Positions 22,506-64,000 of a DNA stretch of 64,000 nt are shown one piece after another. The notes beneath the pieces were generated by a model that did not search any database, was not told the origin of the DNA, and was given only the letters and a program-made list of their open reading frames with translations. Every line of letters begins with the position of its first letter. Positions within the stretch are counted from its first letter, which is position 1. Both the position numbers and the translations under genes were made by a program. The DNA is taken from positions 47,516,553 through 47,580,552 of the forward strand of contig NC_052157.1 of the NCBI RefSeq assembly GCF_902713615.1, in the 5' to 3' direction. Source of the stretch: Scyliorhinus canicula (lineage: Eukaryota).

Positions 22506-24169
22506 CCTGTGTCACATCGCCTCCCGTCAACAGGTTACTTTAATTCTCTGATGATGGGATCATACAGAATTCGCTGTCCATTTGCACTGCATCTGCGCGT
22601 TGGTGAAACTGGGCAATGTGAAGTGACGCTGTACGTTATGCTCCACACTGCACACTGAGCAAGTTCCATTAACACCAACACAGAGGTACAGGCATTGACA
22701 TTGCACATTACACACCACCCTGACAACCACATGCAATCTCAAGTGTAACATGTAGTAATGACCGGGATACAAAACGCTTTTCCTCAGTTTTCACAGGAGT
22801 TGGGATATCGCGATGGGGGCTGAACAGAAATGCAGGTAGAACTGTTAACAGAACTTCACCTTTAAAGGGAAATTACACCAATGAGGTTACACAAATTTAA
22901 GGTCGACAGATCTTAACATTTCAGATGTCCCTAAGTGACCTGGGTTTGGGTTTGATCTGGGTTTTTATTCACGGATGATACAAACCTAGGTGGAAAATAA
23001 GAAATCAGAGTGGTACATAGAAGCCAAGTGAATTCAAAAGTACCTGAACAATATCTGAATGTGGTTAGAACTATTAGAAGATAAAATTCAATACAGATAT
23101 ATGTGAAATGAAGTCCAAGGCAGTTGGATAGGAGGATGTGGCGGATCTCAGGTTTCTATTGAAGGGTGAGCTAGATTGGCTAAATGGCCACTGGCTGCAA
23201 TCGATGTTTTCAAAATTTATTCTGTCACAGGATGTGGGCATCACTGGCTCAGCCAGCATTTTGTTGCCAATCCTTAATTACGCTTGAGAAGGTGGTGGTG
23301 AGCTCCCTTCTTGAAGTCCATGCAGCCCATGTGGTGTAGGTACACCCACAGTGCAGTTAGGGAGGGAGTTCCGGGTTTTGATCCAGTGACAGTGAAGGAA
23401 TAGTGACGTAGATCCAAGGCATGGGGCGAAGTAGTTATCAGTTCTGCCTCACAACGCTAGTGACTCGGGTTCCATTCCGAACCTGGTTGACAGCCTGTGT
23501 GGAGTGCGCACTTTCTCCCCGAGTCTGCGTGGGTTTCCTCCGGTTGCTCCAGTTTCCTCCCACAGTCCAAAGATGTGCAGGGTAGGTGGATTGCCCATTC
23601 TAAATTGCCCCTTAGTATCCAACATTTTAGATGGGGTTATGGGAATAAGGCGGGGGTGTGGGTCTGAGTAGGGTGCTCTTTCACAAGGTCGGGGTGCAGA
23701 CTCAATGGACAAAATGGCCTCCTTCTGCACTAAAGGGATTCTATGAGGTCAGAAATTATTACAGCTACCATATTATATCCCATTCCAAAGACTGTCCCAA
23801 ATAGCAAGAGAAGCCAGGCTTTTGTGAGAGGAAAATATACTAAATTAGATTGGATTGACTCCAATAAATAAACTCTATTTTTAATCCACTGCCCATTGAT
23901 GCTTCGCTGTTGAGGACTTCTTGCCAATTTTTCACGATAATTAAGGCAGGATTAAGATTATGAGCACTTGGAAAATGGGGGGAGTTGATGGCCTACAATG
24001 TGGATGTGGAGCAGTGATTGAGAAGCCAGAGCTCCCTGCTTGGCAGCAAGAAAGAGGCAGACTGTCAAATGTGATGAACTCAAGGGATTAAACTTCACCA
24101 AGTAGTCAATTTAATTTTATGGTTAGGATCCTTTCTTTTAAAAAAAAAGTACATTTTAAAAGGTTTTAC

Positions 24170-24349
24170 CTGAATCCAAGATGTCTGAAATACTTGCTCC
24201 CGAGCTTTGACAGTGCATTCTTGGCAAAGTCATCCAGCTTGGCTGACCCCTCGTCATTCACAGCCACTGAAATTATCAGGCCTTCCTTAACTCTGTCCAA
24301 GTACTCAGCAAGACGTTTACTTTCATCTTCGCTTTTATAGGTGTCAAAT
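24170..24349 (-). CDS. CEMIP: CEMIP exon, GG domain (FDTYKSEDESKRLAEYL...SVAVNDEGS...LGFR)
   Basis: Within ORF 24166-24423. 180 nt, cacag|...|gtaaa, phase 2-2. Confidence 0.96.
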
Positions 24350-24811
24350 CTGTGATTTTGTTTTAAACAATAGAGGTACTTAATTGAGGCATCAAAGTCA
24401 TCAATCACCCTGAAAGCCGTCAAGAACAGCAGATGCAGAACTCAAATCCAACAAGAAGCCCGTCAGAGTAGCGAGTGCAAGCATGACAAACAGATACACA
24501 TCAAAGCCGTGCATCATGGGAGCAGCAGCTGTTTCAGACTCTTTCCAACATTGCAGTGGATCATGTTGTATATTTTGTATCCCTTGGAGCTACGCAGAGA
24601 TGACACTAGTTTCTATGTGTGTATCTACTTCATGCTTCAGCTCTGGCTTCCAGCTCTGCTCCAATTTGTTTACTTTCTTCTGAGTCCACACCCAGACTTA
24701 ACTAATCAAGCACAGTGAGCATAAATAGTAAACAGACTCACGGAAGAATTGAACACGACAGATGAGATGGCCAATATGGACTAAAAATGGAAATGACTGG
24801 TCTAAACTCAC

Positions 24812-25048
24812 CTGTCTGAATGGACGACTTCTCCGATCAGGTTAATTACATGGACTATAATGCCTCGCTGGCCCCAGCTTCTTTCAAAGTAGTAGCCACC
24901 CTTGCTCATCCCACCAGGGTGCAGGGTGTTGTTCAGAAATGTCCAGGACAGTTTGTGAGCACCGTGAATTTCAAGTGTCCCTCCTCTACCAACTCCAATG
25001 AACTTCAACCCAAAATAGCTGTGAAGGTTTTCTGTTTCTTCATCAGAT
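24812..25048 (-). CDS. CEMIP: CEMIP exon, G8 end/GG domain start (SDEETENLHSYFGLKFIGVGRGGTLEIHG...SWTFLNNTLHPGG...HSDR)
   Basis: Overlaps ORF 24808-25008. 237 nt, donor AG|gtgagt, phase 2-2. Confidence 0.96.
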
Positions 25049-25296
25049 CTTCAAAAAAGACAACATAGAAGTGAAACTCGTAGAGGCAAAGCATTTCATC
25101 CAAGAATAAAAAGATATTTTAGTTTTCATAAACTATATTGGGGAGAAATATTATGAATTTGTGCTCCAGACGTTGGAACTAATTTTAACATCAAGTGGTA
25201 ATGTAAAACGGGAAGTAATTTATTCAACTGTCTCTTACACACCTCTCCCCATTTTGATTCCCACGGAAGTCAATACTAGTTAAAATTTGGAGTGAA

Positions 25297-42192: not shown

Positions 42193-42330
42193 CTCCATCA
42201 TAAATGTGAATAGAATGGACTGTGGCGGAAGACGACAGCAGCAGTTTCCGATTACGGCCAACGTTCAGTCGATGTTCCTTATCGTGGCCAGGATTCCAGT
42301 GGTGGAGATCTGGATCCTTGTCAGGACAAG
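42193..42330 (-). CDS. CEMIP: CEMIP exon, start of G8 domain (ACPDKDPDLHHWNPGHDKEHRLNVGRNRKLLLSSSATVHSIHIYDG)
   Basis: Matches CEMIP CPDxxPxLxxWNPGHD...LLLxSSATVxSIHI. AG/GT boundaries, 138 nt, phase 1-1. Confidence 0.95.
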
Positions 42331-45120: not shown

Positions 45121-47196
45121 ATAAGAACATAAGAACTAGGAGCAGAAGTAGGCCACCTGGCCCCTCATGCCTGCTCCACCATTCAATGAGATCTTGGCTG
45201 ATCTTTTGTGGACTCAGCTCCACTTTCTGTCCCGAACACCATAACCCTTAATCCCTTTATTCTTCAAAAAACTATCTATCTTTATCTTAAAAACATTTAA
45301 TGAAGGAGCCTCAACTGCTTCACTGGGCAAGGAATTCCATAAATTTACAACCCTTTGGGTGAAGAAGTTCCTCCTAAACTCAGTCCTAAATCTACTTCCC
45401 CTTATTTTGAGGCTATGCCCCCTAGTTCTGCTTTCACCCACCAGTGGAAACAACCTGCCCGCATCTATCCTATCTATTCCCTTCATAATTTTAGATTTTT
45501 CTATAAGATACCCTCCTCATCCTTCTAAATTCCAATAAGTACAGTCCCAGTCTACGCCACCTCTCCTCATGATTCAATCCCTTCAGTTCTGGAATTAACC
45601 TAGTGAATCTCCTCTGCACACCCTCCAGCGCCAGTACGTCCTTCCTCAGGTAAGGAGACCAAAACTGAACACAATACTCCAGGTGTGGCCCCATTAACAC
45701 CATATACAATTGCAGTATAACCTCCGTAGTCTTAAACTCCATCCCTCTAGTAATGAAGGACAGAACTCCATTTGCCTTCTTAATCACCTGTTGCACCTGT
45801 AAACAAACTTTTTGCGACTCATGCACTAGCACACCCAGGTCTTTCTGCACAACAGCATATTTTAATATTTTATCATTTCAATAATAATCCCTTTTGCTGT
45901 TCTTCCTTCCAAAATGGATGACCTCACATTTGTCAACATCGTATTCCATCTGCCAGACCCTAGCCCATTCACTTAACCTATCCAAATCGCTCTGCAGACT
46001 TCCGGTATCCTCTGCAGTTTTTGCTTTACCACTCATCTTAGTGTCGTCTGCAAACTTGGACACATTGCACTTGGTCCCCAACTCCAAATCATCTATGTAA
46101 ATTGTGAACATTTGTGGGCCCAACACTGATCCCTGAGGGACACCACTAGCTACTGATTGTCAACCAGAGAAACACCCATTAATACCCACTCTTTGCTTTC
46201 TATTAATTAACCAATCCTCTATCAATGCTACTACTTTACCCTTAATGCCATGCAACTTTATCTTGTACACCTTTTGTGTGGCAGCTTGTCAAAAGCTTTC
46301 TGGAAATCCAAATATACCACATCCATTGACTCACCATTATCTACCGCACTGGTAATGTCCTCAAAAAATTCTACTAAATTAGTTAGGCACGACCTGCCCT
46401 TTATGAACCCATGCTGCGTCTGCCCAATGGGACAATTTCCATCCAGATGCCTCGCTATTTCTTCCTTGATGATAGATTCCAGCATCATCCCTACTACCGA
46501 AGCTAACTGGCCTATAATTACCCGCTTTCTGCCTACCTCCTTTTTTAAACAGTGGTGTCACGTTTGCTAATTTCCAATATGCCGGGACCACCCCAGAGTC
46601 TAGTGAATGTTGGTAAATTATCACGAGTGCATTTGCAATTTCCCTAGCCATCTCTATTAGCACTCTGGGATGCATTCCATCAGGGCCAGGAGACTTGTCT
46701 ACCTTTAGCCCCATTAGCTTGCCCATCACTACTTCCTTTGTGATAACAATCCTCTCAAGGTTCTCACCTGTCATAGCCTCATTTCCATCAGTCACTGGCA
46801 TGTTATTTTTGTCTTCCACTGTGAAGACCGACCCAAAAAACCTGTTCAGTTCCTCAGCCATTTCCTCATCTCCCATTATTAAATCTCCTGTCTCATCCTC
46901 TAATCTAAAGGACCAATATTTACCTTAGCCACTCTTTTTTGTTTTAAATATTTGTAGAAACTTTTACTATCTGTGTTTATATTGTGAGCAAGTTTACTCT
47001 CATAATCTATGTTACTTTTCTTTATAGCTTTTTTAGCAGCTTTCTGTTGCCCCCTAAAGATTTCCCAGTCCTCTAGTCTCCCGCTAATCTTCGCCACTTT
47101 GTATGCTTTTTCCTTCAATTTGATACTCTCCCTTATTTCCTTAGATATCCACGGTCGATTTTCCCTCTTTCTACCGTCCTTCTTTTTGTTGGTATA
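45121..47196 (-). mobile_element. CR1 LINE 3' part, same family as 3920-5525
   Basis: Same RT motifs; (gttcttat)n tail. Confidence 0.93.
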
Positions 47197-49217
47197 AGGG
47201 TGTTAATAAATTATGAATGGGCCTTCTGAGCAGAGTCAGTTCAAGAAAAGGAAATATTCTACTCCAAGTCCTGCAATTCATGTGCTACATAAAGGGGAGG
47301 GACCTAGCTATCACTTTCAGTTATCATCTATTGCATGTTTGTAACACAGCTCCAAATGATGGGGTTACACCTCCTCCATGTATTGGTCATAAGAGTGTTG
47401 AGTGAAACCAATTTGTAAATTCGGAGTCTAATTCCTAGTGGGCAGTAACCTACAGGGGCATCATTGAATCAGGGAATTACTTTTCGGCCCATTGTTTTTG
47501 CGCTGCCTCTTTTCAGGAATTGAGCAGGTCCCATTCCCCTACCTTTTCTCCATTGTCCAGGATCTTTTCCTTTCAGTTAATGATCCAATTCCCTTTTGAA
47601 AGCCTTGTCCACCAAACTCTCAAGCAGCGCACTCCAGAGCTTAACCATTCGTGCACCAAGGTTGCCGCTGCATCTTCTAATATTTGAGGGGTGGCACAGT
47701 GGTTAGCACTTCTGCCTCACAGCATTATGGACCTGGGATCAATTCCGGCCTTGGGTGACTGTGCAGAGTTTGCACGTTTTCTCCGTGTCTGTGTAGGTTT
47801 CCACAAGGTGCTCCAGTTTACTTCCACAGTCCAAAGATGTGCAGGTTAGGTGGATTGGCCATGCTAAATTGTCCCTTAGTGTCCAAAAGGTTAGGTTAGG
47901 TTATGGGGATCGGTTGGGGGTGAGGGCATAGGTAGGTTGCTCTTTCAGAGTGTGGATTGGCCATGCTAAATTGCTCCTTAAGTGTCCAAAGGTTTAGGTG
48001 GGGTTCCTGTGTTTCGGAGGTGGGTTGGAGACGTGGGTCTGGGTAGGGTGCTCTTTCAGTGGGTCAGTACAGGCTCGATGGGCCGAATGGCCTCCTTCTG
48101 CACTGTAGGAATTCCATGATTCTATGATATGATTCACTTCTATCAGTGTTCCCCAATACGGGAACAGATTATCCATATCCACTTTGTCCCGACCCTTACA
48201 ATTTTGAACACGATCGAATCTTCTCCCAATCTTAACACAAGTGCAAAATTCATCAGGTGCTGGAAATCGGAAATAAAAACAGAAAATGCTGGAAATATTC
48301 AACAGGTTGGGTAGCATCTGTGAAGAGAGAAAACAATTTTGGATCTATGCCCTTTGATCAGAGCGATGTAAGGTCACAGACCTTAAACACTGGGCTGAAT
48401 GTCATGCCCCCCCCCCGGCCCGGCATGTTATCAGCAGGGCGGGGAGGGGGTAACATAAAATATGACAGGTGGACAGGCCGCAGTCTTTCCCCCAAACTGT
48501 TTGGGTGGGCAGGTACCAAAATAAACAGCTTGCGCATGATTTTTGAAAAATCATTAACAAGCTATTGGCTTGTTAACAAGCCAAGAATATTATGCTGTCC
48601 ACGCCCAAAATACGGTTGCTGTGGACATGCCTGCAGGAGTGGGGAGGCCATTTTTTCACCCAACTTGTTAAAAGCCTAGAAGGATGGAGGGTGGGGAGGT
48701 GGGGGGTTGCCTCTGCTCATCAGGGCACCTCCCCCCATTCCCAAAGATGTTACTCCACCCCTTTAGTTGCTTCCTGCCTGGACATCAAAACTTGCCCCAC
48801 ACACCCTTCACAACCCACGGCGCTCCAATCCCTCCCTGTCCAATTCCGCTGGCCTTCCTCTCTCCAGGATCCAGGTTGTCTCCATCTGCACTGTTGTTCT
48901 GTACTGTAAATTCTACGATCCCTGGGTCTGCTTGCAGTCCCCGTAGTGTCCACTACTAAACTCTGGCACTGCTGGGACTGCTAGAGCTGTTAGGCAATCA
49001 GAATCCCTTTCATCTCAGAGGACAATTAGGCCTACAGCTTCATGTCTCAGCTGAAGGATGACACCTCTGACAGTGCAACCCTCTCGGTACCGTACTGATG
49101 CATCAGCCAATAGGGTCTCCATGATGTGGTGGGAAGCCCTGAATCAAATTTATAAGATCTTCATTGGCCACAAATAAAGCAGCGCCGCTTAACTGATCAT
49201 TCCAATTCTACACGTAC

Positions 49218-49287
49218 CTGCAAATAACGCAGGCAGATTTAGGGCTAGAAGCCACCCTATGTTGTAGAGTAAGTGCATCATCATCAT
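49218..49287 (-). CDS. CEMIP: CEMIP first coding exon (signal peptide MMMMHLLYNIGWLLALNLPALFA); exon including 5'UTR spans 49218-49373
   Basis: (ATG)4 start preceded by an in-frame stop. Hydrophobic signal-like peptide. Donor GCAG|gtacgt is phase 1 and joins the next exon as G|CT = Ala. Acceptor is ttttattgttttcatccag. Confidence 0.82.
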
Positions 49288-49344
49288 CTCCTTCTTTGTG
49301 CTTCTCCTGGTTCCACAGGTTATGAAGTGCAGAGTCACTTTCTG

Positions 49345-49359
49345 TTATTGGCCGATCAT
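49345..49359 (-). promoter_or_regulatory. Short uORF (MIGQ*) in the CEMIP 5'UTR
   Basis: ATG ATC GGC CAA TAA begins 72 nt upstream of, and in frame with, the main ATG. Confidence 0.5.
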
Positions 49360-52300
49360 TCGCGTCCAAACTTCTGGATGAAAACAATAAAAAATGATGA
49401 GTTACAAAATCAGAAATTTGGCTTTTAATGTTGCAATACATGGAGTAAGGTTAAACATGGCATTCTAATAAGTTTGGAAAAATACCGAGGCATCAATTGA
49501 AAATGATTCTCAGACCCCTTTTCAGATAATGTGTGTTCAACAGCAATGCACATTGTGAGTAACAATACAGGCATAAAATTAAATCTTCATTTCCAATTAA
49601 ACCAGAAGGCTTCAACTTGAAGACGCATGAGGGACCCGACAATCACACTTCACGTTGCCTCAATACTGGGACATTATACCAAACTTTAGATACAGCAGTA
49701 GCCCATGAGGCCTGTTATGTTGGATACTATACACACCAGTCATCTAGAGCAGGCTTTCAGCTTCCGGCCCTGTTAATCATCCTCTCCTTCCTCAAACAAC
49801 AGGCTTAGTTGGCTCCCAATACCACTAAGAAATAGGTTGTCATTATCGCACACTTGTTTAATGCCTTCAAATAAGCTCATCTTTTCCTTCTCAATTACAA
49901 TCAGAGGGCACCAAATTAACTAAGATGTTAACCTCCCAAATAGTTCATCCTCAAATCATCCAGGCTGAGAGAACATCTCTCCAGGGGGAAAGCTCACACA
50001 AATATTACAAGGACCAAAGTAAAGGCAGAAATGGGTGTCAAGTTAGTTTGAAAGAAGTAATAGAAGAGTCTAATTAAGTGTGTTCAATATATGCAAGGTG
50101 ACCAATTATGAAATAAAATAAGGGACACTTTTATGGTAGGGAGTAGGGGGTAGAGGTGGGTGTTGACCATAAGAACGGGAGGGGGAGGGCATTTCTGGTC
50201 ACCTTGTCTCCCCCCCCCCCCTGGTGCCGGCACCAGAGTGCAGATGCTCTCAAAGAAAAACAAGGTAAAGCTAAGAAGTGACTCCCAGGCTCAGTCTCCC
50301 ACAGGCTTTAGAAATAAGGCACCAGAGGCACCCCTTAGGGACACAGGATAAACCGGTAAAATAAAGGACAATCTCTTAAAATATGGGAGAGTTCGCCAGC
50401 CTGAATGTAAGGGCTCTGGCTCCCAGTCTAGCCAGTTGAGGCCCAGTTGCCTGCATTCTTTATATTGTGGGTTTACAGCTTTGGAAGGGGCTGCTTTTAA
50501 CTCTGATGTCTCTTCGTCAAAACACCGAGACCTATCAGTTTCAGCAACTCATGACGTATGGAGAAAAACAATAACATGGAATGAAGGACCATAAATCTCT
50601 GGTACAGCCTCACGTGACCCATGAGGACGGTTATTTGGCCACCCCTGAAATGCCAGACTAATGCTATTATACACAATCCTGCAAAAACATATGAAACTGA
50701 AGTTTGTACGCTTTTATATTGCCATTTATATAGTAGTTTTGGAGTTACTGTGGCTAGTTTTGTTGGTGCGATTTGTCCAAAATCAGTCAAACCAGGGGAG
50801 AAGACGACACTTTTGAGGGCAGCTTACATTCACCTTGACTTGAATCTCTGCCATCTTCTGCGCTAATTTAAAATGGTTATGCTGGAAGCCTGCCTGCCCA
50901 CATAACTGGCCACATCCCCCAGGTCAAATTTATCACCAATTACACATTTCCACTTGTTTATCAAATGGCTCCATAATGAAGCGTTCCTTTTAAGCTCCAA
51001 GGACACAAATCATTTTAAAGCTTCTGGTGAAATATTTTTCTAATTACCAAGAAACTGACTCCTAGACACCAGCATAACTAACAAATCATTCTGTTTGGGT
51101 TCTTTAAATCATTTTCCGTTATTTAAACTCATGTGCAGCTCACAGGCGTGGGCCAGACACTGATGAAAATGCTTGTTTTATGCAATAAACCCATTTTCAG
51201 CCAAATGAATGAAACTTCCCCAATTAAACTCTCTGAAATACATCAAGGAATATTTTAAAAAGAAAACCATAGATGGAAAAAAATATTCTAAAATGCTGTC
51301 CATTTGCATTAGTTCACTTAGCGTCTGGCGATATGCAAAAGCAGTTAGAATTTTGTGTGCAGTGGGTTCCCAGATCGCTGAGTGCACCTAAAGTGGGAAC
51401 TTTATTCTAGTATCTTCAATGTCATTTATTATCGCAAAGACAGATTTAATAAGAATGAACAGAAAACCAAAGATCGATATAAAAAGAAGAGTGACCAAAA
51501 CCTTTGTCTGAGAGGTAAGTAATCTGAGAGAGAGAGGGAGAAGTGTAGAGAAGAAGGAGGTTATGGAGCCTAGGTAGCTACAGACAAGGCTGCCATTTGT
51601 GGAGCAAAGGGAAGGGAGGACGCACAACAGACCTGAGGAAGAGAGAGGTCGAGATGGATTAGACTGGAGGAGGTTACATAGACAGAGAAGGGAGATAAAC
51701 ACAAAAATATTGGGGAAGTTCTGTTTATCTTAAAGAACATTTTAAACATTGTTTGCGTCAATAGACTGGAAAGCATCAATCATTTTGCTTAGAAATTTGA
51801 ACTCTAATTCAGACGACTCGGCATAATATACTTTAGAAAACATTTTAATCAGCATTGGAGATATACACATGGCTGCGGATATCACAAGATAAAAGCAGCT
51901 GACTTTGTATCTTTCAGCAATGGCTGTAAAAAATTAAACTTGACATCAATGAATAAAAGTAATGAACTTGAGAGCCAGTTCCAAGAAAATACAGAAGATT
52001 CCTGCTGACCTATGAATTGGCATTAATAGATTCCCACTTGACTTCGAACAGACTGAAGACTGCACTTCAGCTGCACCCATTCAGGTGAACTTTATCCTTG
52101 ACTATTTACTGAACTTCCTCTGTTGATTGGGTTTCCAGAGAATTGACTATTTCATTCTTCCCACGCTCAAGGTTAAATGCCGTTACAAATTTTGAATTTT
52201 AAAACGTGCCAAAATAAAATGCCACAGATGCAAACATTGTCAGATTCAAATGCGTTAGGTATCCCCTCACGTTGGCCCTGAAAAACTGGGCCACTGTAAA

Positions 52301-52837
52301 GTAAATAAAGAAAACCTTTAGACCGAAGTCTTTTGATCTGCCCATTCCAACTGCTGTCACATGGTGCACATGTGTTTACAGAGCTGAATGGATTCCGTGC
52401 AAATTTTTTTTTGATAGAGGAAACTAAATTTTTTCCAGTTTTCAAGTCCAAGATTTCAGCAGGGTGCTCCTGCTTTCAAACAACAAGATGTCTCCAAAAC
52501 TCAAAGGTTGTTATTCCATGTGGGCTTCCAGCTGTGATCCCATGATCAGTTGGATCATGGGAATCTCACCAGTTCGGATGATCAGATTTCCAAAAGACAA
52601 AACTGGGACCCATTGAAAAGCCTTTGGAAGGTGGGACTCTGCGATGATTGACATTTTGGGCGACCAATGGCAGGAGTCTGAGAGAGGGGCAGCTGACTGT
52701 GGGAAGCCATGTGATGACATCTGTCGGAATATGTCCAGCCAGATTTGGCAGTCCTAGTCCATAGATTGTTTAGGTTTCATTAGCAATGGAGCTGTCGGTG
52801 TTAAAAACCGTAGTGCCACCTCCCTCGGAGACACCAT

Positions 52838-53539
52838 GGGCGCGATTCTCCGCAACGGCCGACGCCGGCGTGAAACCTGGAGTGTTTCACGACAGCGTCG
52901 GAGGCCGCTCCTCGCCCCCTTTTCTCCCCCCCCCCAACCGGGGGGCTAGGAGCAGCGTTGCGGGAAACTCGGCCGCCAGGCCTTGACGCTTCCGTCAAGG
53001 CGGCGCGCCGAGAATGACGTGGCGGACGGCGCCTAAGTGACGTCAGCCGCGCATGCGGAGGTTGGCCGGCGCCAACCCGCGCATGCACGGTTGCCGTCTT
53101 CCCCTCCGCTGCCCCGCAAAATGTGGCAGCTTGATCTTGCGGGGCGGCGGAGGGGAAAGAGTGCGTCTCTTAGAGATGCCGGCCCTACGATCGATGGGCA
53201 CCGATCGCGGGCCAGTCCCCTCACGAGCACGCCCGTGGTGCTCGATCTTCTCTCCGCCCCCCACAGGCCCCACACTTACCTGTTGCGCGCTGTTCACGCC
53301 GGCAGCGACCAGGTGTGGTTGACGCCGGCGTGAACAGGTCGGGATCGTCAGGCCACTCGGCCCATCCGGGCCGGAGAATCGGCAGTCGCCGTGAAAAACG
53401 GCGACCGCCGATTCTTTGAGCGACGTGTCACAAAACGCGACACGCCATTTTGGGGGGGTGGGAGAATCGCGGGGGGGGGGTGCCAGAGCGGCCCTCCCGC
53501 GATTCTCCCACCCGGCCTGGGGAGTGGAGAATCACGCCC
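52838..53539. mobile_element. Harbinger-type MITE, TSD CAT
   Basis: Ends GGGCGCGATTCTCC / GGAGAATCACGCCC flanked by CAT. Very CpG-rich. Confidence 0.88.
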
Positions 53540-54733
53540 CATGGGGGTGATGGGGTGAGGGGACAGGTCTGCTGCATGCAATGCAGTGCAATGTGATGTT
53601 TATAGGAAGAAGGATGACATTTTCCTTCCCAGGCGGCAAGGCCGTTGAATCGCAGGAGAGGCCAGAATCGAGAACCTCGCCAGGCGCTAATCTGTTTGCG
53701 ATCAAACCCGCCCGATCCCGTTGGCAAAATCAGGATCTGGCCTCAGTGTGGTGAGAAACCAATAATCACCACTTAAGCCCAATCTCCATTCAATTAACAG
53801 GAGAGACCCTGTATCTAACAGCCTCCCATGATCTAATGCCCTCCGCAGCAAGTGGTCACATGGGCGCCGGTTAATACACCTTTTTAACAAGGAGAAGCTG
53901 GCAGAAAAGCGGCTGTGGGGACTCGAGGAAGTGAGTACTATCTTCTCTCACGGGCAAAGAGCCCGTGGGCACTGGGTTTGCTGCCCCGGTGCTTAGAGGG
54001 GGTGTAGGAGACACCGAGGGGCCAGCCTCGTTCACGGTGGGTTGCCATTGTTGCGGGGTTGCGGATCAGTGGGAGTGGCCGCCCATGGCTGGGCTAGGCT
54101 GGGGGGGGGGGGGGGGATATGGGTTTTTTAGTGCCAGCGGGTCCAGCATGTCACCCCCCTGGACCATGTGGTCCAATTCCTGGAGCAACCACAGCCCCTG
54201 CCCGCCTGCCCCACCCACCACCCATAACTCCCACTGACCGCGGAGGCCTCTGACCACGCGACTGGATGCTATTGCCAATTGGCAGTTATAGTTAAGTGAG
54301 CATTTCACACATCCCAAGTAGATTCCCATGGGTAAGCGTGCCATGAAGCATGTGGGAGTTATTGCTTAGCATCCCAATCGGACTGCGCTGCCTGGATACT
54401 GTGCCTAAACGCTGCGGAGGGATCATCTGGAATACAGTGGCCAAAATCCGGACATCCAGGGTCTGGGCCCCAGCACCGGGGACATATGCACAACCCGAGG
54501 GTGGGTGAATGCACTGGGAAAGGGACCAGCACCCGGTCCAGGTAACATTACGTGCTGGTGTCTGGGGTACAGGGTCTGGAGTCCAGTGGGCAGCGGCCCC
54601 TGTTGCGGCCAGGGGTACGTGGGCAGAGTGTGTCGTTAGAAGGGGTGGAAGAGCAATGGCCTGACTGGAGGGTCCCAGGATGGAAGACACCGCTGGCTGT
54701 CAGTCCCACACCCTCCCCAATTCCTTACGTGGG

Positions 54734-55938
54734 ATGGACGATATCTTGAACCCCGTGGAAGCTGCCCTCGTGCGGATGGCAGCCAGATGCCGGAGGAGAT
54801 GGCGGCAGCAGCATTGACAGAGGCTTGAGGCAGCGGCCCATGTACACAGCTGTGCCACACACCCTGAGGACCCAGCCGCCCATCAGACCAGGGAGGGACC
54901 CAGAGAGGGAGGCTGGCAACGGCTCAAGGTGCACAGGCATCGCTGGTCTTTCAAAACGATGATGGACAGCAAGTGCACAGGAGGCTCCATCTCAACAAAG
55001 AGACAGGCGGCACCTGTGCCATGTCTTTGTGGACTTGGTGCAATGTGGAAGCGGAGGACACTCGCAGCCAGTGGCTGTCAAGGTCACTCAGCCCTGAATG
55101 CCTATGCTTCAGGATCATTCCAAGGCTGAGGGGGGACTTGTGCGGCATCTCATTAGCTAACAGCCCACAAGTGCCCGAGCAGAAAACTATATAAACTTTG
55201 ACATGGACCAAGCCCAACAAGATACCCGAGCAGCAGGATTCTCTGCCATCGCCGGGTTGCCCCAGGCCCAGAGGCTAATAGATGGTATGCATGTTGTCTT
55301 GCGCTCACCGGGACCATCTGGGAGTGCCCTACATCAACAGGAAGGGTTCCACTCCTGAACATCTAGCTCATGTGCGACCACCTCATGACGATCATGTACA
55401 TGTGTACACGCTTCCCAGGGAGTGTGCACGACAGCTACATCTTGGAGCACTCAGACATCCCCAGCCTGTTCGAAGACCACCCTAGGTTGGCCAGTTGGCA
55501 CTTGGGGATAAGGGGTATCCACTGAGGACCTGGCTAATGACGCCAGTACGAAGGCTGGAGACCATATACAATGAGGCCCATGCGACCACCCGGTCTGCCA
55601 TTGAGCAGGGCATCGGAGTTTTCAAAATATGTTTCCAATGCCTCGACTGCTCTGGTGGTGCACTGCAGTGCACCCCCAGAGAATCGCCCGCTTTGTGGTA
55701 ATCAGCTATGCGCTCCACAACTTGACACACCAGCGGGGCAACGAGGTGGAGGACGAGGAATATGTGGCAACCTCAAAAGAGGAGAAGGATGAAGGAAAAG
55801 CTGGACTAGGAGGGGCTGGAGGACGAGCTTGGTGAGGACCCGCAGGACTAGCCGGAGGATGAAGGACAGGCAGGAGTAGCAAGGGTGCGATAACCCCGGA
55901 AGGCCAGGGAGGCCCTCATTCCCATCCACTTCACATAG
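54734..55938 (+). pseudogene. Harbinger (HARBI1-like, DDE_Tnp_4) transposase pseudogene
   Basis: Motifs [46 protein letters not shown] and [17 protein letters not shown] are spread over several frames, with in-frame stops. Confidence 0.88.
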
Positions 55939-56455
55939 GACATGGCCCTGTCCATCATTCCCCCTCTCCCCACCCTCCCTTCCCATGTCCCCCCGCCCTT
56001 CACCACCCTGCCCCCCCCCCCCCCCCCCACCCCATTCCACCCTCCTAGGGTCTGTGTAACGTCACTCTAGGGTGGGTTGTTGGTTGATGGTATGTATGTC
56101 GCCTTGTGCTCACCGCGCCATCTGGGAATGCCCTACATCAACAGAGCACTGTCAGCGGGTCACTGTTGAGGACAGGGGATGATGACAACCCATAGAGAGC
56201 TGAGTGCTGGACCTCCTCATTCAATGCCATAGCCTGACCCCTTCCTGCCTGCTGGGTGTTCGCTCACTCCAGGGCGGGGGAGTAGGAGGGGGGGAGGGAG
56301 CGGGGGAGCCCAGGGCACCCACAATCGGGTGGATGGGGCAGGGGATTGGTGCTCCTCCCACATTGTTCAACAACGTGTCCGAGGAGTCATGTTGATTGAG
56401 GCCAACAGACTTTAATGGTTTACAAAAGCGCCCCGCATTGCTCCACTCTCCCGAT

Positions 56456-56742
56456 CATAAGAACAACATAAGAACATAAGAACTAGGAGCAGGAGTAGGC
56501 CATCTGGCCCCTCGAGCCTGCTCCGCCATTCAATGAGATCATGGCTGATCTTTTGTGGACTCAGCTCCTCTTTCCGGCCCGAACACCATAACCCTTAATC
56601 CTTTTATTATTCAAAAAACTATCTATCTTTACCTTAAAAACATGTAATGAAGGAGCCTCAACTGCTTCACTAGCCAAGGAATTCCATAGATTCACAACCC
56701 TTTGGGTGAAGAAGTTCCTCCTAAACTCAGTCCTAAATCCCC
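56456..56742 (-). mobile_element. CR1 3' fragment inserted in the Harbinger element
   Basis: Near-identical to 45121-45390; ataagaac tail repeats. Confidence 0.88.
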
Positions 56743-56869
56743 TTTAGGACTGAGTTCTGCCTCACTCACCCCTCCCCTCCCAGACCATCCCCTGCCCACA
56801 CTCTTCCCCCCGAACCCTGCCAGGTGGGTGGTACTCGGGGGAGCTGGTGGCTGCCAGTGCAACTCTGTA

Positions 56870-58386
56870 GGATATTTCTGTCTTGGTCGGTGCTCACAGT
56901 CCTTGGGGTTTACCTCGAGATGGAGGGGCAGCTGGTTCGAGCCCCGGCTACCCCTGTATTGTCTGGCTCTGTGTTTCCCCAATGTATGCAGCATGGTGAT
57001 GCCCCTCAGTGACTGGAACATGCTCTGGAGCACCCCAGCAATGCCCACCTGTGACTAGGATGCATCACCCAGCGACCGGGAAATGCTCTGGAGGGCCTCG
57101 GCAATGCCCACCTGGGATTGGGACATGTCCCGCAGTGCTTCATCAAGGTCCACATGGTACTGGGTCACTTCCCCCAGCAACTGGGATATGCTGTCGAGGC
57201 ACTCAGCAATGGCCAGAACCAACTGAGCCAAGCCTTGGACACCTCCACTCATGCTGCTGGCATCATGTACCAGGCTCTCCACTGCGGTCTCCATCCTACC
57301 AGTGTTGGCCCTGGTGCCACTCATTGCCGGCACCATCTCCTGTGCCCATATCCTCTGGGACTCCTCCAATCAGCTATGGGCCTGCTGAAATGCCGTGACA
57401 TGCCCCGCTGAATCGCACAGCCACACCCTATTGGTTGTATCAGCTCCGGGTAAACCTGTTCCAGAAGCTCAGCATTAACTGGGACCCAGCTGGGTCCTGG
57501 GATCCAGCAAACCTCCGACTGCTGTCTCACCTGGGTGTTCCTGCCTCCACCTGATGTGCATCAGCAACTGTGTAGTGCTCACCAGAATGTGCCCCAGAAG
57601 CCTGTCCACTACTTTCACCCACCGAGGTTCGTGTCTCTGCGCTGGTGGAGGGTGGGGATGACAGCTGTGCCGCGACTATTATGGTGGCATCCTCGGAGCT
57701 CTCCTCCGAGGTGTTCTCTTGGATGGCAGAGAGGGGGGGGGGGGCACGGACCCCAGGACGGGCGGGTTGCAGGTCCTGCGGGAGAATGGAGATGTGGTCA
57801 GTGGGAGAGATGGGTCCGTCTATGTGGCATTAATAACTCACTTTGGTAGGCAATCTGGGTGAGGTCCAGTAGATCCTCACCTCTGCCCCATGCGATGACC
57901 TCTACGTAACTCACTGCTCTGTCTCTGGCCACCCCGCGACCTCCAGGACCCATGCCTCCTAGGGGTTGAGGACCCTGATGTATGGCACCCTGCCACCCGT
58001 TGTGCCCTTTCCCATTGGTTATGGCCAACTTCTCCTGTGGGCGCATAGAGGGGGCCACATGTGTGGTTGCTTGCAGGAGGGTGGGCTTGGGAGTTGGGGA
58101 GAGGGTTTGAGGAGATGGGCTGGATGGGTGGGGGGTAGGTGGCCGAAGGGGGGTCTGGTGCAAACTCGCCCAAGTGGTCAGGTGGAGGTCGTTGACCATT
58201 TTGCGACACTGGATGCCGCTCCTCCTGGTCATGCTCCCTGAGCTGACTGCCACTTCCTCCCAGAAAGCTGTGGCTGACCCTCCCTGAAACTCGGGGGAAT
58301 AGGGCAACCTGTCTGGCCTCCACCACGTTCAACAGTCTGGCCAGGTCGGCATCGCCGAATGGTGGGGCTGGCTGTCTCAGTGGCAT
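56870..58386 (-). pseudogene. Harbinger Myb/SANT-like (trihelix) accessory gene, spliced and frameshifted
   Basis: APPFGDADLARLLNVVEAR...LFP, WEEVA, QCRKMVNDL and EKLAHN motifs. Intron signals near 58037, 57879 and 57775. C-terminal coiled-coil repeats. The 3' end is approximate. Confidence 0.75.
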
Positions 58387-58589
58387 ATCTGCAAGCTGAG
58401 TGGGGTTGGCTGTGCAGGAGCGGTTTAACTGCTGCTTGGGGCCTTGTTAAATGGACCAATTAACATTTCATAGCAGTGACGGTCTTGACATGCCGAGCAT
58501 TGGGATGTTCGTGGCAGCTCCTGCTCGCTACCACACTTTGAAACGTTTTGGTTAAATCGCACCCTATATTTAACATAAAGGGAAAAAGT

Positions 58590-58694
58590 GAAAACCGGGA
58601 CATTTGGACTATTTCGAGGAATTTGTGGGGACACTGGGACATTTAATGAAAAACCGGCACTGTCCCAGCAAAACCAGGACGTCTGGTCATCCTA
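58590..58694. mobile_element. hAT-Blackjack-like MITE end
   Basis: Repeated gggac motifs ending ggacgtctggtcatccta (TAGGGTGACC-type TIR). Confidence 0.5.
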
Positions 58695-60038
58695 ACAATC
58701 CCCTCTATCCCAATACATACAACATGGCAAAGAAGGCTTGGAGTTTGGTACTTACGTAAACCTAAAATAAAGATTATTCAATGTTAACAAAACAATATTC
58801 ACAGGCTTAATTTTTTAAAAAGCCCCAAAACATTCAAAAATAAACATGATACATGCACTGAGGGAGTCATTTAGATAGTTTGGAACACATGTTCTTACAT
58901 AGCCTGAACAGCGGTAAATACCGACCGAGCCGAAATCACCAGTCTGCTTACTTAAACATTTGCTATAAATGATGCTACTTTTGCCATGAAATTGAAAGTG
59001 AATCAATGGACATCCAGTCAAGAGCGACAGTAAAAACTGAGCGAGCCTTTGTCTAGTTTGCACATAAATTATTAACAAGGTTTCTCTTTTGCAATTAAAT
59101 TTGGTGTGTAATGGATTTACATTGAAGAAGTTAACAATTTAAGTCAACACTTAAATTGATCTGTAGCTTTTTTGTGCAAATGTAAGGCAGAGTTCTTTAT
59201 TTCTCCTTTTAATTTTAACTTTTGAACACCCCAACCTTCGACATCTGAGAACAGCTGCAGAGAAAGTGATTGAAAAACTTTGAATTAAATTCCCCCGCGC
59301 ATGATAACACTTTGTGTAATGCTACATGGACTGAGGTTAAGTTGGTTCTGCATTACAGTTCTGTAAGCTACACCCAATCTTTATATGTCATGATCATAAT
59401 TTATGACCAGCTCTTTAAAACCAGCTAGTTTTTAAGTTTCTCTATTTTAAGAAGTGGGAATGTATGTCTACAGAGACCATAATTAAATCAGACCTAACAC
59501 GGTCTATACAATAAAGCAGCTGTACTTGAACCTCATTCATTACAGAACAGAAGTCAATGAATGACAGCATGATTTCAACGTTATTAACCCTCGGAGGACT
59601 GTGGTACTATTTCAGTGCCACTTGCAAGTATATAAAAGTTCTGTTTTCCTTAATTTCGAATATTCTCATGAACAAGATGAGACTTATTCCAACATAATCT
59701 GAATAAGTACAGCAGAACATTCTTTAGAAACCACAACAGTCTGTTTGCATTTTGAAAGACATATCGGCCATGTTTGCCCTCAAAGATTATCAGCCATTTG
59801 AACACTCTGCAATACCCGTTAGGGCTTGACAGATTGTGCTGGTTCATCTGATTTTATTGGACCTCTTCGTTCTCTAGAATTCCGACAGATGTTTAGTTAT
59901 TTTCGATCTGCAGATGCAAGGAACAACACAGGATTAGCAAAATGGTGCACACCCATCTCCACACTCCAAAATACCATCAAATCGAGTTCATCAACCATAA
60001 AATAAGACCATGTGCTCACTGCTCCTGTACATAATATA

Positions 60039-60044
60039 TTTATT
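60039..60044 (-). terminator. Candidate AATAAA poly(A) signal of the CEMIP2-like gene (alternatives at 59853-59858 and 59196-59201)
   Basis: TTTATT on the plus strand downstream of the stop codon. Usage is unknown. Confidence 0.3.
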
Positions 60045-60112
60045 TATGGCAATGATACAGAAGTGGCAGCAATTCAGCAGATTCTCTCTCCTCCTTGTGG
60101 TCACTTTATAGT

Positions 60113-60309
60113 CTAGTTTGAAGATGTTAGGTCTTGAAACAACTTTAAATCTCTCCGGTTTTCCTTGACTTTTCCAGGGCATCCATATTCACTCAGTTTC
60201 AATGGGACATAATGCTGCAAGGAGGCAGCTAGCTGTCCAACACTGTGACTTTGAATCTTAATCCATGCTGGTTTCAGCCGACCCTTGAATCCTAGCATAG
60301 CAAAACTTC
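60113..60309 (-). CDS. Terminal coding exon of a CEMIP2/TMEM2-like cell-surface hyaluronidase (GSFAMLGFKGRLKPAW...VPLKLSEYGCP...RRDLKLFQDLTSSN*)
   Basis: Acceptor tttttgattttag, TAG stop. The LGFxGxxKPxW plus PLxLxEYGCP...RRDL C-terminus is the CEMIP2-type ending, which CEMIP lacks. Orthology versus paralogy is unresolved. Confidence 0.85.
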
Positions 60310-62629
60310 CTAAAATCAAAAATGAACAATTCATTGTTAATTTCTGTCTTTCATGAATTTATTTACAGGCTGCACAATGGAATCTGTGGAATATTTCCTT
60401 ATCTGGCTTGTCCAAAAAAGTTTCTGTACAGAGAAATATTGAAAGCACACACTTACATAGAATTCCTACAGTGCAGTAAGGAGGCCATTCGGCCCACTGA
60501 ATCAGCAACAACCCTCTGAAAGAGCACCCAGCTAGGCTCACCCAATACCCATAACCGCATCTAACCTGCACACCTTTGGACAATAAGGGGCAATTTAGCA
60601 TGACCAATACACTTCGCCTGCACATCTTTGGACTGTGGATAGAAACCGGAGCACCCGGAGGAAACCCACGCAGATACGGGGAGATGGTGCAAACTCCACA
60701 CAGTCACCCAAGGCTGGATTTGAAACCGGGTCCCTGGCGCTGTGAGGCAGCAGTGCTAACCACTGTGCCATCGTGCTGCCCATATATATAAAGAAATGTC
60801 CATTGCATAACATGCTCACAAGTCAAGCAAGTGTTAACAATATAACGTTTAATGAGAAGCAACGTGCATATTGGATCAGATGAATAGTGTTTTCACCAAA
60901 GCAGTATAAAGGTGAGGCAGATCTGACCATTCATCATAAACTTTTCATTTCCCCATCATAGCATCCATCTGCCTCTTAAATACTTTCAGATTATCACACC
61001 CCAACCCAGAACCAGCAACAGGTATCAATCAATCCCAGATCTGCTTCTGCGGTACCAGCCATTCAGCCACTAAAACCTTTTCTCCAAAAGATGCATAAAG
61101 AACAATTAAAACCTGAAAAAAGGCAAATCATAGGCAGCAGAAAGCTTTTAAAACAGCAAAATCTGAGTTTGGATAAAGGACAAAGAAATAGAGGCAAGAT
61201 GGCCTATCGAGCCTGCTCAATATTGAGTACAATCATAGCTGATCTTATGTTTCTGTTCCACTTTCCCGTCCACTCCCGGTATCCCTTGATTCTCTGAGAG
61301 ACCAAAGATCTGTCTAACCCAGCCTTAAATATATTCAACGATGGAACATCCACCACCTCGAGGACAGAGAATACCAAAGATTCACAACCCTTTGAGTCGA
61401 GTGATTTCTCTTAATCTCAGTCCGAAAAGATCAGCTACTTATCCTAAGAAGGTGCCCCCCCCCCCCCCCCCCCCCCTCCAATATTCTAGATTCCCCAGCC
61501 CAGGAGAAACAACCTTTGAGAAATTACCTTACTGAGCTGAGCCCCTTTCGCATTACGAATGTTTCAATGAGATCATCATTTATTTAGGAGCTGGTTTAGC
61601 ACAGTTAGCTAGACAGCTGGCTTGTAATGCAGAACAAGGCCAGCAGCGTGGGTTCAATTCCCTTACTGGCCTCCCCGAAGATGCACCGGAATGTGGCAAC
61701 TAGGGGCTTTTCACAGTAACTTCATTAAAGCCTACTTGTGACAATAAGTGATTATTATTATTCACCTAACTCCCAGAGGTTCTTGATTAATAAGGGGATC
61801 AGGGGTTATGGGGAGAAGGCAGGAGAATGGGGATGAGAAAAATATCAGCCATGACTGAATGGCGGAGCAGACTCGATGGGCCAAGCGGCCTAATTCTGCT
61901 CCTATGCCTTATAAACCCAATTTACTCAGCCTCTCATCATCGGACTGACAATCTCCCCCCCGCCCACCCCCCCCCAATCCCTCATCCCAGAGGCCAATTA
62001 AGTGATTTTAACACATACCAAATATTGTATTAGTCTGGTAATGCTGGTAATACACTGGAATAATCCCATTAAACACCCGAGTGCTGCCTGGATGAGCGCG
62101 TAGAGGATTGCAGTCCCAGAGTGGTGTCTGCCTGATTTTCTGCACATTCTGTGTGAGGATTATTTATGGCCCAGGTGAATATATACATCCAGGGATGAAC
62201 GCTATCAGCCCCAAGGTGTTTATAACCCATAATGACTTCAGAACTGGCAAATAATGCATGCATCTGTAATTTAGCTAGACTAGGTTTTTAATGATATGCA
62301 ATTCACTAACTGAATTTGTGAGAATAATCATTTGTTTTATTGCCCATAAAATGCACAAAATAATCAGATCCTACTAATGCGTGGGACGGAATGTTCATCT
62401 GTTGACAGATGCTAGATTTTGTTGACTGATTTGAAACGTGCCAAAATTGCAGACACAAACACCGGGTTTGTGTGATTATAGTTTGAAATCTGTGTACTTC
62501 CTTTCTGCTGCATAATTCTAAACCTTACAGAAACAAAGGGTGTGACTTCCTTCATAGAAAATAGTTGTTCACGGCATTGAGAGCTTGTATTCCAGAATTA
62601 ATAACAATTCTCAGCACTGGGGCCTATGT

Positions 62630-64000
62630 ATTTTTCCATTCATTTAGGGGATGTCGGCATCACTGGCAAGGTCTACATTTTTTGCCCATGCCTAATTGCC
62701 CTTGAGAAGGTGGTGGCGAGATGTCTTCTTGAACCGCTGCAGTCCACGTGATGTAGGTACATCCACTGTGCTAGTAGGGAGGGATTTCCAGGATTTTGAC
62801 CCAGCGACAGAGCAGGAACGGTTGATATATTTCCAAGTTAGAGTAGCGTTCCCATGCACCTGCTGCCCTTGTTCTTCTAGACAGTGGAGGTCGTAGTTTG
62901 CAAGGTGGTTATAGGAAACTTGGTGATCTGCTGCAGTGCATCTTGTGGATGGTACACACGGCTGCCAACGTGCATCTGCAATGGAAGGGGTGAATGTTTA
63001 AGGTGGTGGATGAGGTGGACTGCTTTGTCCTGGATGGTTTTGAACTTCTTGAGTGTTATTGGAGCTGCTCTCATCCAGGCAAGTGGAGAATATTCCATCA
63101 CGTTCCTTACTTGTAGATGGTGGATAGGTTTTGGGGAGTCGGGAGGTGAATTACCTGCCGCAGATTTCCCAGCCCCTGCCCTGCTCTTGTAGTCACAGTA
63201 TTTATCTGGCTCGTCCTATTCACTTTCTGGTCAATGGTAACCCCCAAGATATCAATGGTGGAGGGTTCAGCGATTGAAATGACGTTGATTATGAGGGAGA
63301 GATGGCTGGATTCTCTCTTGTTGGAGACGGTCATCACCTGGCACTTGTTTGGTGGGATGTTACTGACCATTTGCCTGTCCAAGCCTGAATGTTGTCCAGG
63401 TCTTTCTGCATGCAGGCAAGGACTGCTTCATTTCTGAGAGGTTGTGATTGGAACTGAACTTTGCGCAACCAGTGAATTTCTCCATCTGAGAAAAGGGAAG
63501 GTCATTAATGAAGTAGCTGAAGATGGTTGAGCCTAGGACACTACCCTGAGGAACTCCTGCAGTGATGTCCTGGAACTGATTTGATTAGCTTCCATCAACC
63601 ACATCCATCTTCCTTTCAGCTCGGCATGGCTCCAATCAGTGGAGAGTTTTCCCACCCCAATTCCCAATTATGTCAATTTTGTCAGAGCTGTTGATGGTAC
63701 ACTGTCAAATGCTGCCTTGTCGCCTCGGGCAGTCACTCTCACCTCACCTCCTGAATTCTGCTCTGTTGTCCATTATTGGACTTTAGCTGCCATGAGGTCT
63801 AAATCTGTGTCAGGCCAGAGCAACCCAAACAGGATCAGTGAGCAGGTTGTTTCAGGTAAGTTCATCGCAGCGTCAATGACATCTTCCATTACTTTGTTGA
63901 TGATTGAGAATAGACTGATGTGCCTGTAATTGACTGGGTTGGATTTGTCCTGATTTTTGTTGACAGGACTTACATATGCAATTTTCCACATTATCAGATA
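62630..64000 (-). mobile_element. CR1-group LINE fragment (third family), runs off the window
   Basis: WKIAYVSPV...NYRHISL and MEYSPLAWM motifs. Confidence 0.78.

Follow-up and report, generated by a model that had tools for sequence, protein, structure and literature searches.

CEMIP2 (TMEM2), encoded at 9q21 in human and represented by structure 8C6I, is a cell surface hyaluronidase, and CEMIP (KIAA1199 or HYBID), encoded at 15q25 beside ABHD17C, is a secreted protein that depolymerises hyaluronan. The hyaluronan field takes these two as the full family and argues from mouse and human which of them is the real enzyme. On the human map, the immediate upstream neighbour of CEMIP is ABHD17C and that of CEMIP2 is ABHD17B. 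The stretch analysed here, referred to as the window, is 64,000 nucleotides of Scyliorhinus canicula (C12:47516553-47580552, where C12 is contig NC_052157.1), and its exons are 88 to 97% identical to proteins of Scyliorhinus torazame. Two genes, both on the minus strand, meet head to tail in it: an upstream gene of membrane type, here called CEMIP2L, and CEMIP. The order on C12 is ABHD17 (C-type by position), CEMIP2L (178 kb, 22 coding exons), a 10.8-kb spacer, and CEMIP (171 kb). From homology and the trees described below, CEMIP2L was assigned to the CEMIP family as its third member, and it is conserved among jawed vertebrates.

The CEMIP2L-CEMIP junction and the upstream gene

The preliminary description of this DNA had placed a CEMIP2-type last exon about 10.8 kb before the CEMIP start codon on the same strand. 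This proved exact to the base, as 60309 is the first base of that exon and 49218 is the last base of the first CEMIP coding exon, with 10,825 bases between the CEMIP2L stop and the CEMIP ATG. The features of the junction are listed below by window position; positions with a contig prefix are those of the assembly.

60310 to 64000, minus strand: 3' part of the last CEMIP2L intron, from the tblastn exon map; the preceding exon lies outside the window at C12:47581674-47581787, and the non-repeat bins 60858-61251 and 62040-62630 carry no unique RNA depth
60113 to 60309, minus strand: last coding exon of CEMIP2L, including the stop codon at 60115-60113, with the acceptor AG at 60311-60310; from homology, sequence reading and RNA-derived contigs
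60023 to 60112, minus strand: 3' untranslated region (UTR) of CEMIP2L, from contig pieces and depth; good coverage ends near 60023, and thin coverage runs on to about 59175
49288 to 60022, no strand: intergenic spacer between CEMIP2L and CEMIP, with many transposon remains and a GC-rich block at 52-58 kb
55495 to 55701, plus strand: Harbinger-type DDE transposase fragment within the spacer (Pfam DDE_Tnp_4, E=4.8e-9)

The assignment of the last exon is supported by the following data. The open frame at 60116-60334 (minus strand) matches the C terminus of human TMEM2/CEMIP2 (PDB 8c6i residues 1237-1297, E=5.6e-11), the exon matches residues 1492-1556 of an S. torazame CEMIP2-like protein at 97% identity, and a polypyrimidine tract precedes its acceptor AG. 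When that S. torazame protein (P0165, "cell surface hyaluronidase CEMIP2-like", 1556 aa) was used as the genome search query, CEMIP2L was resolved into 22 exons over C12:47576668-47755168 (178 kb) that cover residues 1-1556. Projected onto P0165, 1545 positions were filled and 96.1% were identical; the one unfilled stretch of at least two residues was a 10-residue gap at an exon junction, and all 22 exons were open. The exon first noticed in the window, for which assembly of the upstream gene had been asked, is thus not orphaned but terminates a complete 22-exon gene. Its identity to the neighbouring CEMIP is only 33 to 65% per exon. The window and the 200 kb that precede CEMIP2L's last intron upstream (264 kb in total) contain no runs of N, and family searches found no CEMIP-family homology within the spacer.

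CEMIP2L is expressed and spliced. Contigs from three runs of the source organism align from 60023 or 60104 to 60311 and continue with 120 to 775 letters that have no match in the intron, so that the break falls at the acceptor. The RNA origin of these runs is a guess, for which the splice-like break argues. In an oligo-dT RNA run, the last exon was covered to a depth of about 6, nearly all in the mate orientation expected of a minus-strand gene, and nearby unique intron bins had a depth of 0. The thin RNA-contig coverage at 59175-60022 (minus strand), about 850 bases below the main CEMIP2L 3' end near 60023, points to either a minor, longer 3' UTR or weak read-through in the direction of CEMIP.

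Phylogeny, family census and gene order

The trees comprised 13 CEMIP, 10 CEMIP2 and 14 CEMIP2L rows, three outgroups (amphioxus, Lingula and Pinctada) and three rows from the source genome. A quick tree of 1314 columns, calculated under LG+C20 with posterior mean site frequencies (PMSF), recovered three clades, each at 100, with CEMIP2 and CEMIP2L joined at 100. A careful tree, from which two very long outgroups were left out, gave each clade and the CEMIP2+CEMIP2L grouping at 100/100 and the topology (CEMIP,(CEMIP2,CEMIP2-like)). The upstream gene of the window was placed with the S. torazame CEMIP2L, outside the CEMIP2 clade and in its distinct sister clade at 100/100; the downstream gene fell with shark CEMIP, and a fragment from C8 fell in CEMIP2. 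Approximately unbiased (AU) tests rejected both CEMIP+CEMIP2L (delta log-likelihood 43.1, p=1.8e-4) and CEMIP+CEMIP2 (43.8, p=1.4e-4). The branching within each clade, which extends from chimaera to birds, agrees with the species phylogeny and separates cartilaginous fishes from bony vertebrates; both duplications are therefore older than crown jawed vertebrates. The earlier suggestion of a third paralog, instead of a recent CEMIP duplicate, is borne out by this gnathostome-wide clade and by the rejection of CEMIP+CEMIP2L. Hagfish CEMIP was sister to jawed-vertebrate CEMIP at 100/100; this position and the amphioxus root place the split between CEMIP and the membrane type before the cyclostome split, though less securely, as the hagfish sequence has a long branch and an odd composition. 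Among the named representatives, no membrane-type protein from a cyclostome was present.

Exon and full-length queries of the genome, which comprises 4.22 Gb in 646 contigs, found exactly three gene-sized CEMIP-family loci, two on C12 and one on C8 (C8:7304826-7358886). Two exons of the C8 gene were 60 to 63% and 49 to 55% identical to Amia or mouse CEMIP2, compared with 55% and 40% for CEMIP2L and 44% and 33% for CEMIP. On these comparisons the C8 gene is identified as the true CEMIP2, separate from the C12 pair. One CEMIP2 exon (Amia CEMIP2 residues 866-928) occurs twice on C8 in inverted orientation, at C8:7323202-7323390 (minus) and C8:7455030-7455218 (plus), with scores of 83.4 and 83.7 bits; the second copy lies 132 kb off, just past an ABHD17 exon. 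A 417-aa stop-free frame at C10:189256052-189256573 (plus strand) matches the CEMIP-family beta-helix at 41 to 46% identity (CEMIP2L residues 695-899, CEMIP 540-638) and is unbroken where the three real genes have several exons. It could be a fourth relative without introns, a retrocopy, or a beta-helix gene unrelated to the family.

CEMIP2L is already present in databases under automatic names. A bird representative (P0017) and 119 further matches are annotated "CEMIP2-like", "TMEM2-like" or "cell surface hyaluronidase-like", the listed matches being from birds, crocodilians, turtles, lizards, frogs, salamanders, coelacanth, gar, bowfin, sturgeon, bichir, eel, sharks, rays and chimaera. Eel is the sole teleost among these matches. 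Many of these species also have a separate CEMIP2 and CEMIP. No mammal was found among the best 120 matches of the bird CEMIP2L, which reached down to 61% identity. Our literature search found no paper describing CEMIP2L or the history of the CEMIP family, and "TMEM2L" in the literature is an alias of CEMIP only. One CEMIP2-like entry, from Latimeria (P0143, 1970 aa), carries additional PF27073 and PF05699 (hAT-type) domains and is probably a gene model fused with a transposon.

The gene order was compared with that of other species. In Podargus (frogmouth), a 311-aa alpha/beta-hydrolase gene, CEMIP2L and CEMIP share a strand and are separated by 7.2 and 7.7 kb; from its last exon, we take the hydrolase to be ABHD17C. 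This last exon served as the ABHD17 query in the source genome and was found at four places: C12:47778170 (minus), C12:47787136 (minus), C8:7446709 (minus) and C18:130642499. The nearer C12 copy lies 23 kb upstream of the first coding exon of CEMIP2L on the same strand, and the C8 copy lies upstream of CEMIP2, again on the same strand. The neighbourhood proposed in the preliminary description, an ABHD17 gene here and a separate CEMIP2 elsewhere, was therefore observed, with ABHD17 upstream of both membrane-type genes; the C and B types of the two ABHD17 genes are inferred from position and the human map. No ABHD17 N-terminal signature was found by a motif scan of the 264 kb. The C12 exon is doubled, with copies 9 kb apart (47778170-47778352 and 47787136-47787318, minus strand) of equal score (87% identity, E=2.6e-32), which represents either a local tandem duplication or a duplication in the assembly.

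Hypanus (stingray) has the same order and strand, with 7.3 kb between the hydrolase and CEMIP2L and 4.6 kb between CEMIP2L and CEMIP. In Elgaria (lizard), a distance of 12.8 kb separates CEMIP2L from the CEMIP gene that follows it on the same strand. CEMIP2L and CEMIP are on contigs of equal size, indicating one chromosome, in Discoglossus, Mixophyes, Hyperolius and axolotl, and CEMIP2 is on another in Discoglossus and Mixophyes. For goose CEMIP2, no called neighbour was present within 10 kb, and those flanks held no ABHD17 exon.

Origin of the tandem pair

It is likely that CEMIP2L and CEMIP descend from an old tandem pair, one gene membrane-anchored and one secreted, which was later duplicated together with ABHD17, after which one copy lost CEMIP and mammals lost CEMIP2L. 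A tandem duplication in stem vertebrates, predating the split of hagfish and jawed vertebrates, would have placed the two genes side by side downstream of ABHD17. Subsequently the block would have been copied by a large-scale duplication, for which the second round of vertebrate genome duplication is the most likely candidate; one copy would have kept ABHD17C-CEMIP2L-CEMIP, and the other would have kept ABHD17B-CEMIP2 and lost its CEMIP. The subsequent loss of CEMIP2L from mammals would leave CEMIP and CEMIP2 on different chromosomes, resembling simple ohnologs, and the human adjacencies of ABHD17C with CEMIP and of ABHD17B with CEMIP2 are what such a loss would leave. A tandem pair preceding the block duplication is the simplest account because it joins the tree, the duplicated order of ABHD17 and membrane-type gene, and the tight, conserved head-to-tail pair. 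The pair is thus inferred to be older than the duplication, instead of CEMIP2L having moved beside CEMIP later. The original proposal of an ancestral tandem pair, with CEMIP and CEMIP2 not simple ohnologs, is accordingly supported by the tree and the conserved layout, while the precedence of the pair over the duplication and the mammalian loss are deduced.

Several points weigh against this history. The order of events is unobserved, and a later juxtaposition could also give a tandem arrangement. The C8 gene entered the tree with only 267 residues, which is thin evidence for its placement. The ABHD17 comparison was of last exons only, at 84 to 87% identity to the bird ABHD17C exon, so that the types are given without a tree. 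The mammalian loss is probable, but the evidence for it, the lack of mammals among the best matches of the bird protein, is indirect. Timed against the first genome duplication, an early origin of the tandem pair would need extra losses.

The strongest competing explanation is that all three genes are ordinary ohnologs, with CEMIP and the membrane type separating in the first round of genome duplication (1R), CEMIP2 and CEMIP2L separating in the second (2R), and CEMIP2L relocating secondarily to the interval between ABHD17C and CEMIP, ahead of the diversification of jawed vertebrates. The topology (CEMIP,(CEMIP2,CEMIP2L)), with hagfish CEMIP in the CEMIP clade, fits this timing equally well, and the survival in the genome of only three ABHD17 last exons and three family genes indicates that many losses occurred anyway. 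Such a relocation would, however, need a precise insertion in the same orientation between linked genes as well as the loss of the original ABHD17 partner of CEMIP2L. The order of ABHD17 and then the membrane-type gene, and their strand, are identical at the C12 and C8 loci, and the tight spacing of 4.6 to 12.8 kb conserved in shark, ray, lizard and bird is predicted by block duplication of an existing pair. Since more events are needed for ohnologs plus relocation than for an ancestral tandem pair, we regard the former as improbable.

The adjacency of CEMIP2L and CEMIP on the same strand would also be expected if the upstream gene were a recent, lineage-specific tandem duplicate of CEMIP or CEMIP2 in sharks. 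This was ruled out by the trees and the AU test (p=1.8e-4): orthologs extend from chimaera to birds, their clade follows the species tree, and the two genes share just 33 to 65% identity per exon, which leaves the explanation a vanishingly small chance. Nothing was found to favour an assembly misjoin, or an orphaned pseudogene fragment, as the explanation of the juxtaposed exon. The 264 kb are free of gaps, none of the 22 exons is missing or broken by a stop, the last exon is covered by spliced RNA contigs, and independent assemblies of three other species (Podargus, Hypanus and Elgaria) have the CEMIP2L-CEMIP order. The misjoin that the preliminary description had asked to be checked is therefore excluded, and an artefact of either kind is considered next to impossible.

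If the ancestral tandem pair is correct, the conserved ABHD17-CEMIP2L-CEMIP block suggests that CEMIP2 has its duplication twin in CEMIP2L and not in CEMIP, and mammals would be the reduced case. The occurrence of a third paralog in sharks, rays, gar, sturgeon, eel, coelacanth, frogs, reptiles and birds means that this unstudied gene may buffer the effects seen in knock-outs and expression studies of chicken, Xenopus and fish. With a tandem pair as the starting point, it also becomes easier to ask whether the anchor, the WxxW domain or the activity is ancestral. It is conceivable, though we think it unlikely, that CEMIP2L and CEMIP were kept head-to-tail, 5 to 13 kb apart, for more than 400 million years as a working unit. 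The pair could share regulatory elements or read-through transcription, and from the membrane CEMIP2L could regulate hyaluronan for secreted CEMIP or present it to this partner, a role that CEMIP2 could have taken over in mammals. A working unit would fit reports in which human TMEM2 is without activity of its own and yet modulates CEMIP-dependent hyaluronan breakdown.

Gene features and comparison with known systems

The domain content of CEMIP2L was deduced from its ortholog P0165, in which G8 (PF10162) was found at residues 295-412 (E=2.4e-29; matching exon C12:47685569-47686141), PF15711 (GG/ILEI) twice (E=4.2e-36), PF24606 (beta-helix) with E=2e-90 and PF24605 (domain X) with E=2.5e-66. 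The domain order is G8, GG, beta-helix, domain X and GG, without WxxW. A hydrophobic stretch at residues 78-96 of the window CEMIP2L has a Kyte-Doolittle peak of 2.0, and the peak of this region is 2.5 to 2.6 in ray and chimaera CEMIP2L; the shark protein looks like a type II membrane protein. In sharks and rays the stretch covers about residues 78-100, resembles the CEMIP2 anchor and is followed by a longer stalk ahead of G8. We know of no established catalytic site in this group, even for TMEM2. Substitution of R265, D273 or D286 in the TMEM2 lectin domain abolishes TMEM2-dependent hyaluronan breakdown (PMC10206443), and the equivalents of all three are kept in 15 of 15 CEMIP2L rows (the window gene and 14 others). 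Because the domain set is that of CEMIP2 and these three residues are kept, CEMIP2L is expected to take part in hyaluronan depolymerisation at the cell surface. Two points count against this prediction: the peak of the anchor region is only 0.9 to 1.6 in the bird, gar, frog and coelacanth models, so that the anchor is weak outside sharks, and the catalytic activity of TMEM2 itself is disputed (PMC10206443). The D273 column is D in all CEMIP2, all CEMIP2L and most CEMIP rows; the exceptions are E in Astyanax CEMIP and N in the CEMIP of guinea pig and of cartilaginous fishes, the window gene among them. In TMEM2, D273N is reported to abolish activity (PMC10206443).

The downstream gene, CEMIP, spans C12:47394853-47565839 and continues past the window end. 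Its coding exons in the window are as follows.

49218 to 49287, minus strand: coding exon 1, with the start codon and signal peptide MMMMHLLYNIGWLLALNLPALFA; donor GT at 49217-49216; tblastn, 70% identity to Chiloscyllium CEMIP residues 4-26
42193 to 42330, minus strand: coding exon 2 (ACPDKDPDLHHWNPG...IYDGG), start of the G8 domain; acceptor AG at 42332-42331, donor GT at 42192-42191; exon map
25705 to 25848, minus strand: coding exon 3; tblastn, approximate bounds, 90% identity to Chiloscyllium CEMIP
24811 to 25050, minus strand: coding exon 4, end of G8 and start of the first GG/ILEI domain; approximate bounds, Pfam G8 E=8.9e-7
24169 to 24351, minus strand: coding exon 5; approximate bounds, 93% identity
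19854 to 19928, minus strand: coding exon 6; approximate bounds, 92% identity
14566 to 14661, minus strand: coding exon 7; approximate bounds, 88% identity
915 to 1046, minus strand: coding exon 8 (DVEWTDWF...), start of the WxxW domain; tblastn exon map

The first CEMIP ATG is at 49287-49285, and exon 1 consists of 23 codons (MMMMHLLYNIGWLLALNLPALFA) plus one base. Read on the minus strand it runs ATG ATG ATG ATG CAC ... GCA G/GTACGT, ending at a consensus donor, and it joins exon 2 in frame via a split Ala codon. The joined N terminus (MMMMHLLYNIGWLLALNLPALFA/ACPD) matches shark and ray CEMIP (Chiloscyllium MMMMMMSYLLYKVGWFLILNLSALFAACPDQDP; Hypanus ...MMMIMHLFWNIGWLLTPNLSVLFAACPDQDP). An ATG at 42397 in the open frame of exon 2 was considered as the start and rejected, as the exon at 49287 reproduces the shark CEMIP signal peptide and has the consensus donor. 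The window gene is nearest to Chiloscyllium CEMIP (87% identity) inside the cartilaginous-fish CEMIP clade, with support of 100/99. Mucin2_WxxW (PF13330) was located at residues 318-401 of the Chiloscyllium protein, between the first GG domain and the beta-helix, and the exon at 915-1046, together with exons at C12:47515027 and 47511302, matches residues 314-470 of that protein.

Other long open frames were present in the CEMIP introns. A 744-codon stop-free frame at 16159-18390 (minus strand) consists of degenerate THSLTP/THTHSQ repeats, lies in a block of strong GC skew (0.71) and is a long tandem repeat within a CEMIP intron, not a gene. The frames at 31366-35437 (intron 2) and 45217-47202 (intron 1), both on the minus strand, are typical of the reverse transcriptase and endonuclease of long interspersed nuclear elements.

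Compared with the known systems, CEMIP2L most resembles CEMIP2, with which it shares the domain order lacking WxxW, a putative hydrophobic anchor at about residue 80 (in sharks), the R265/D273/D286 equivalents, an ABHD17 gene upstream on the same strand, and a sister position in the tree. It differs in forming a separate clade, at about 55 to 58% identity, and in its longer N-terminal region (about 280 residues before G8, compared with about 120). CEMIP2L also keeps the RxWGxR motif, as CEMIP does, whereas CEMIP2 has a one-residue deletion there in the alignment. Furthermore, it adjoins CEMIP on C12 and is not on the CEMIP2 chromosome, and it is apparently absent from mammals. The downstream gene is an ortholog of CEMIP, with the signal peptide, the G8 and GG exons and a place in the shark CEMIP clade; the gene itself is ordinary, and the difference from the human map is that a second family gene sits between ABHD17C and CEMIP. 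A similar pattern of history is accepted for the HYAL clusters (HYAL2-HYAL1-HYAL3 and HYAL4-HYAL6P-SPAM1), where a tandem cluster formed first and the whole cluster was duplicated after (PMC11275217). The two families are unrelated: the HYAL enzymes have another fold and mechanism (GH56), and both of their clusters persist in humans, whereas the CEMIP pair would have been cut to one gene per chromosome in mammals. CEMIP2L is no new kind of system, but an unstudied addition to a known family with a revised history.

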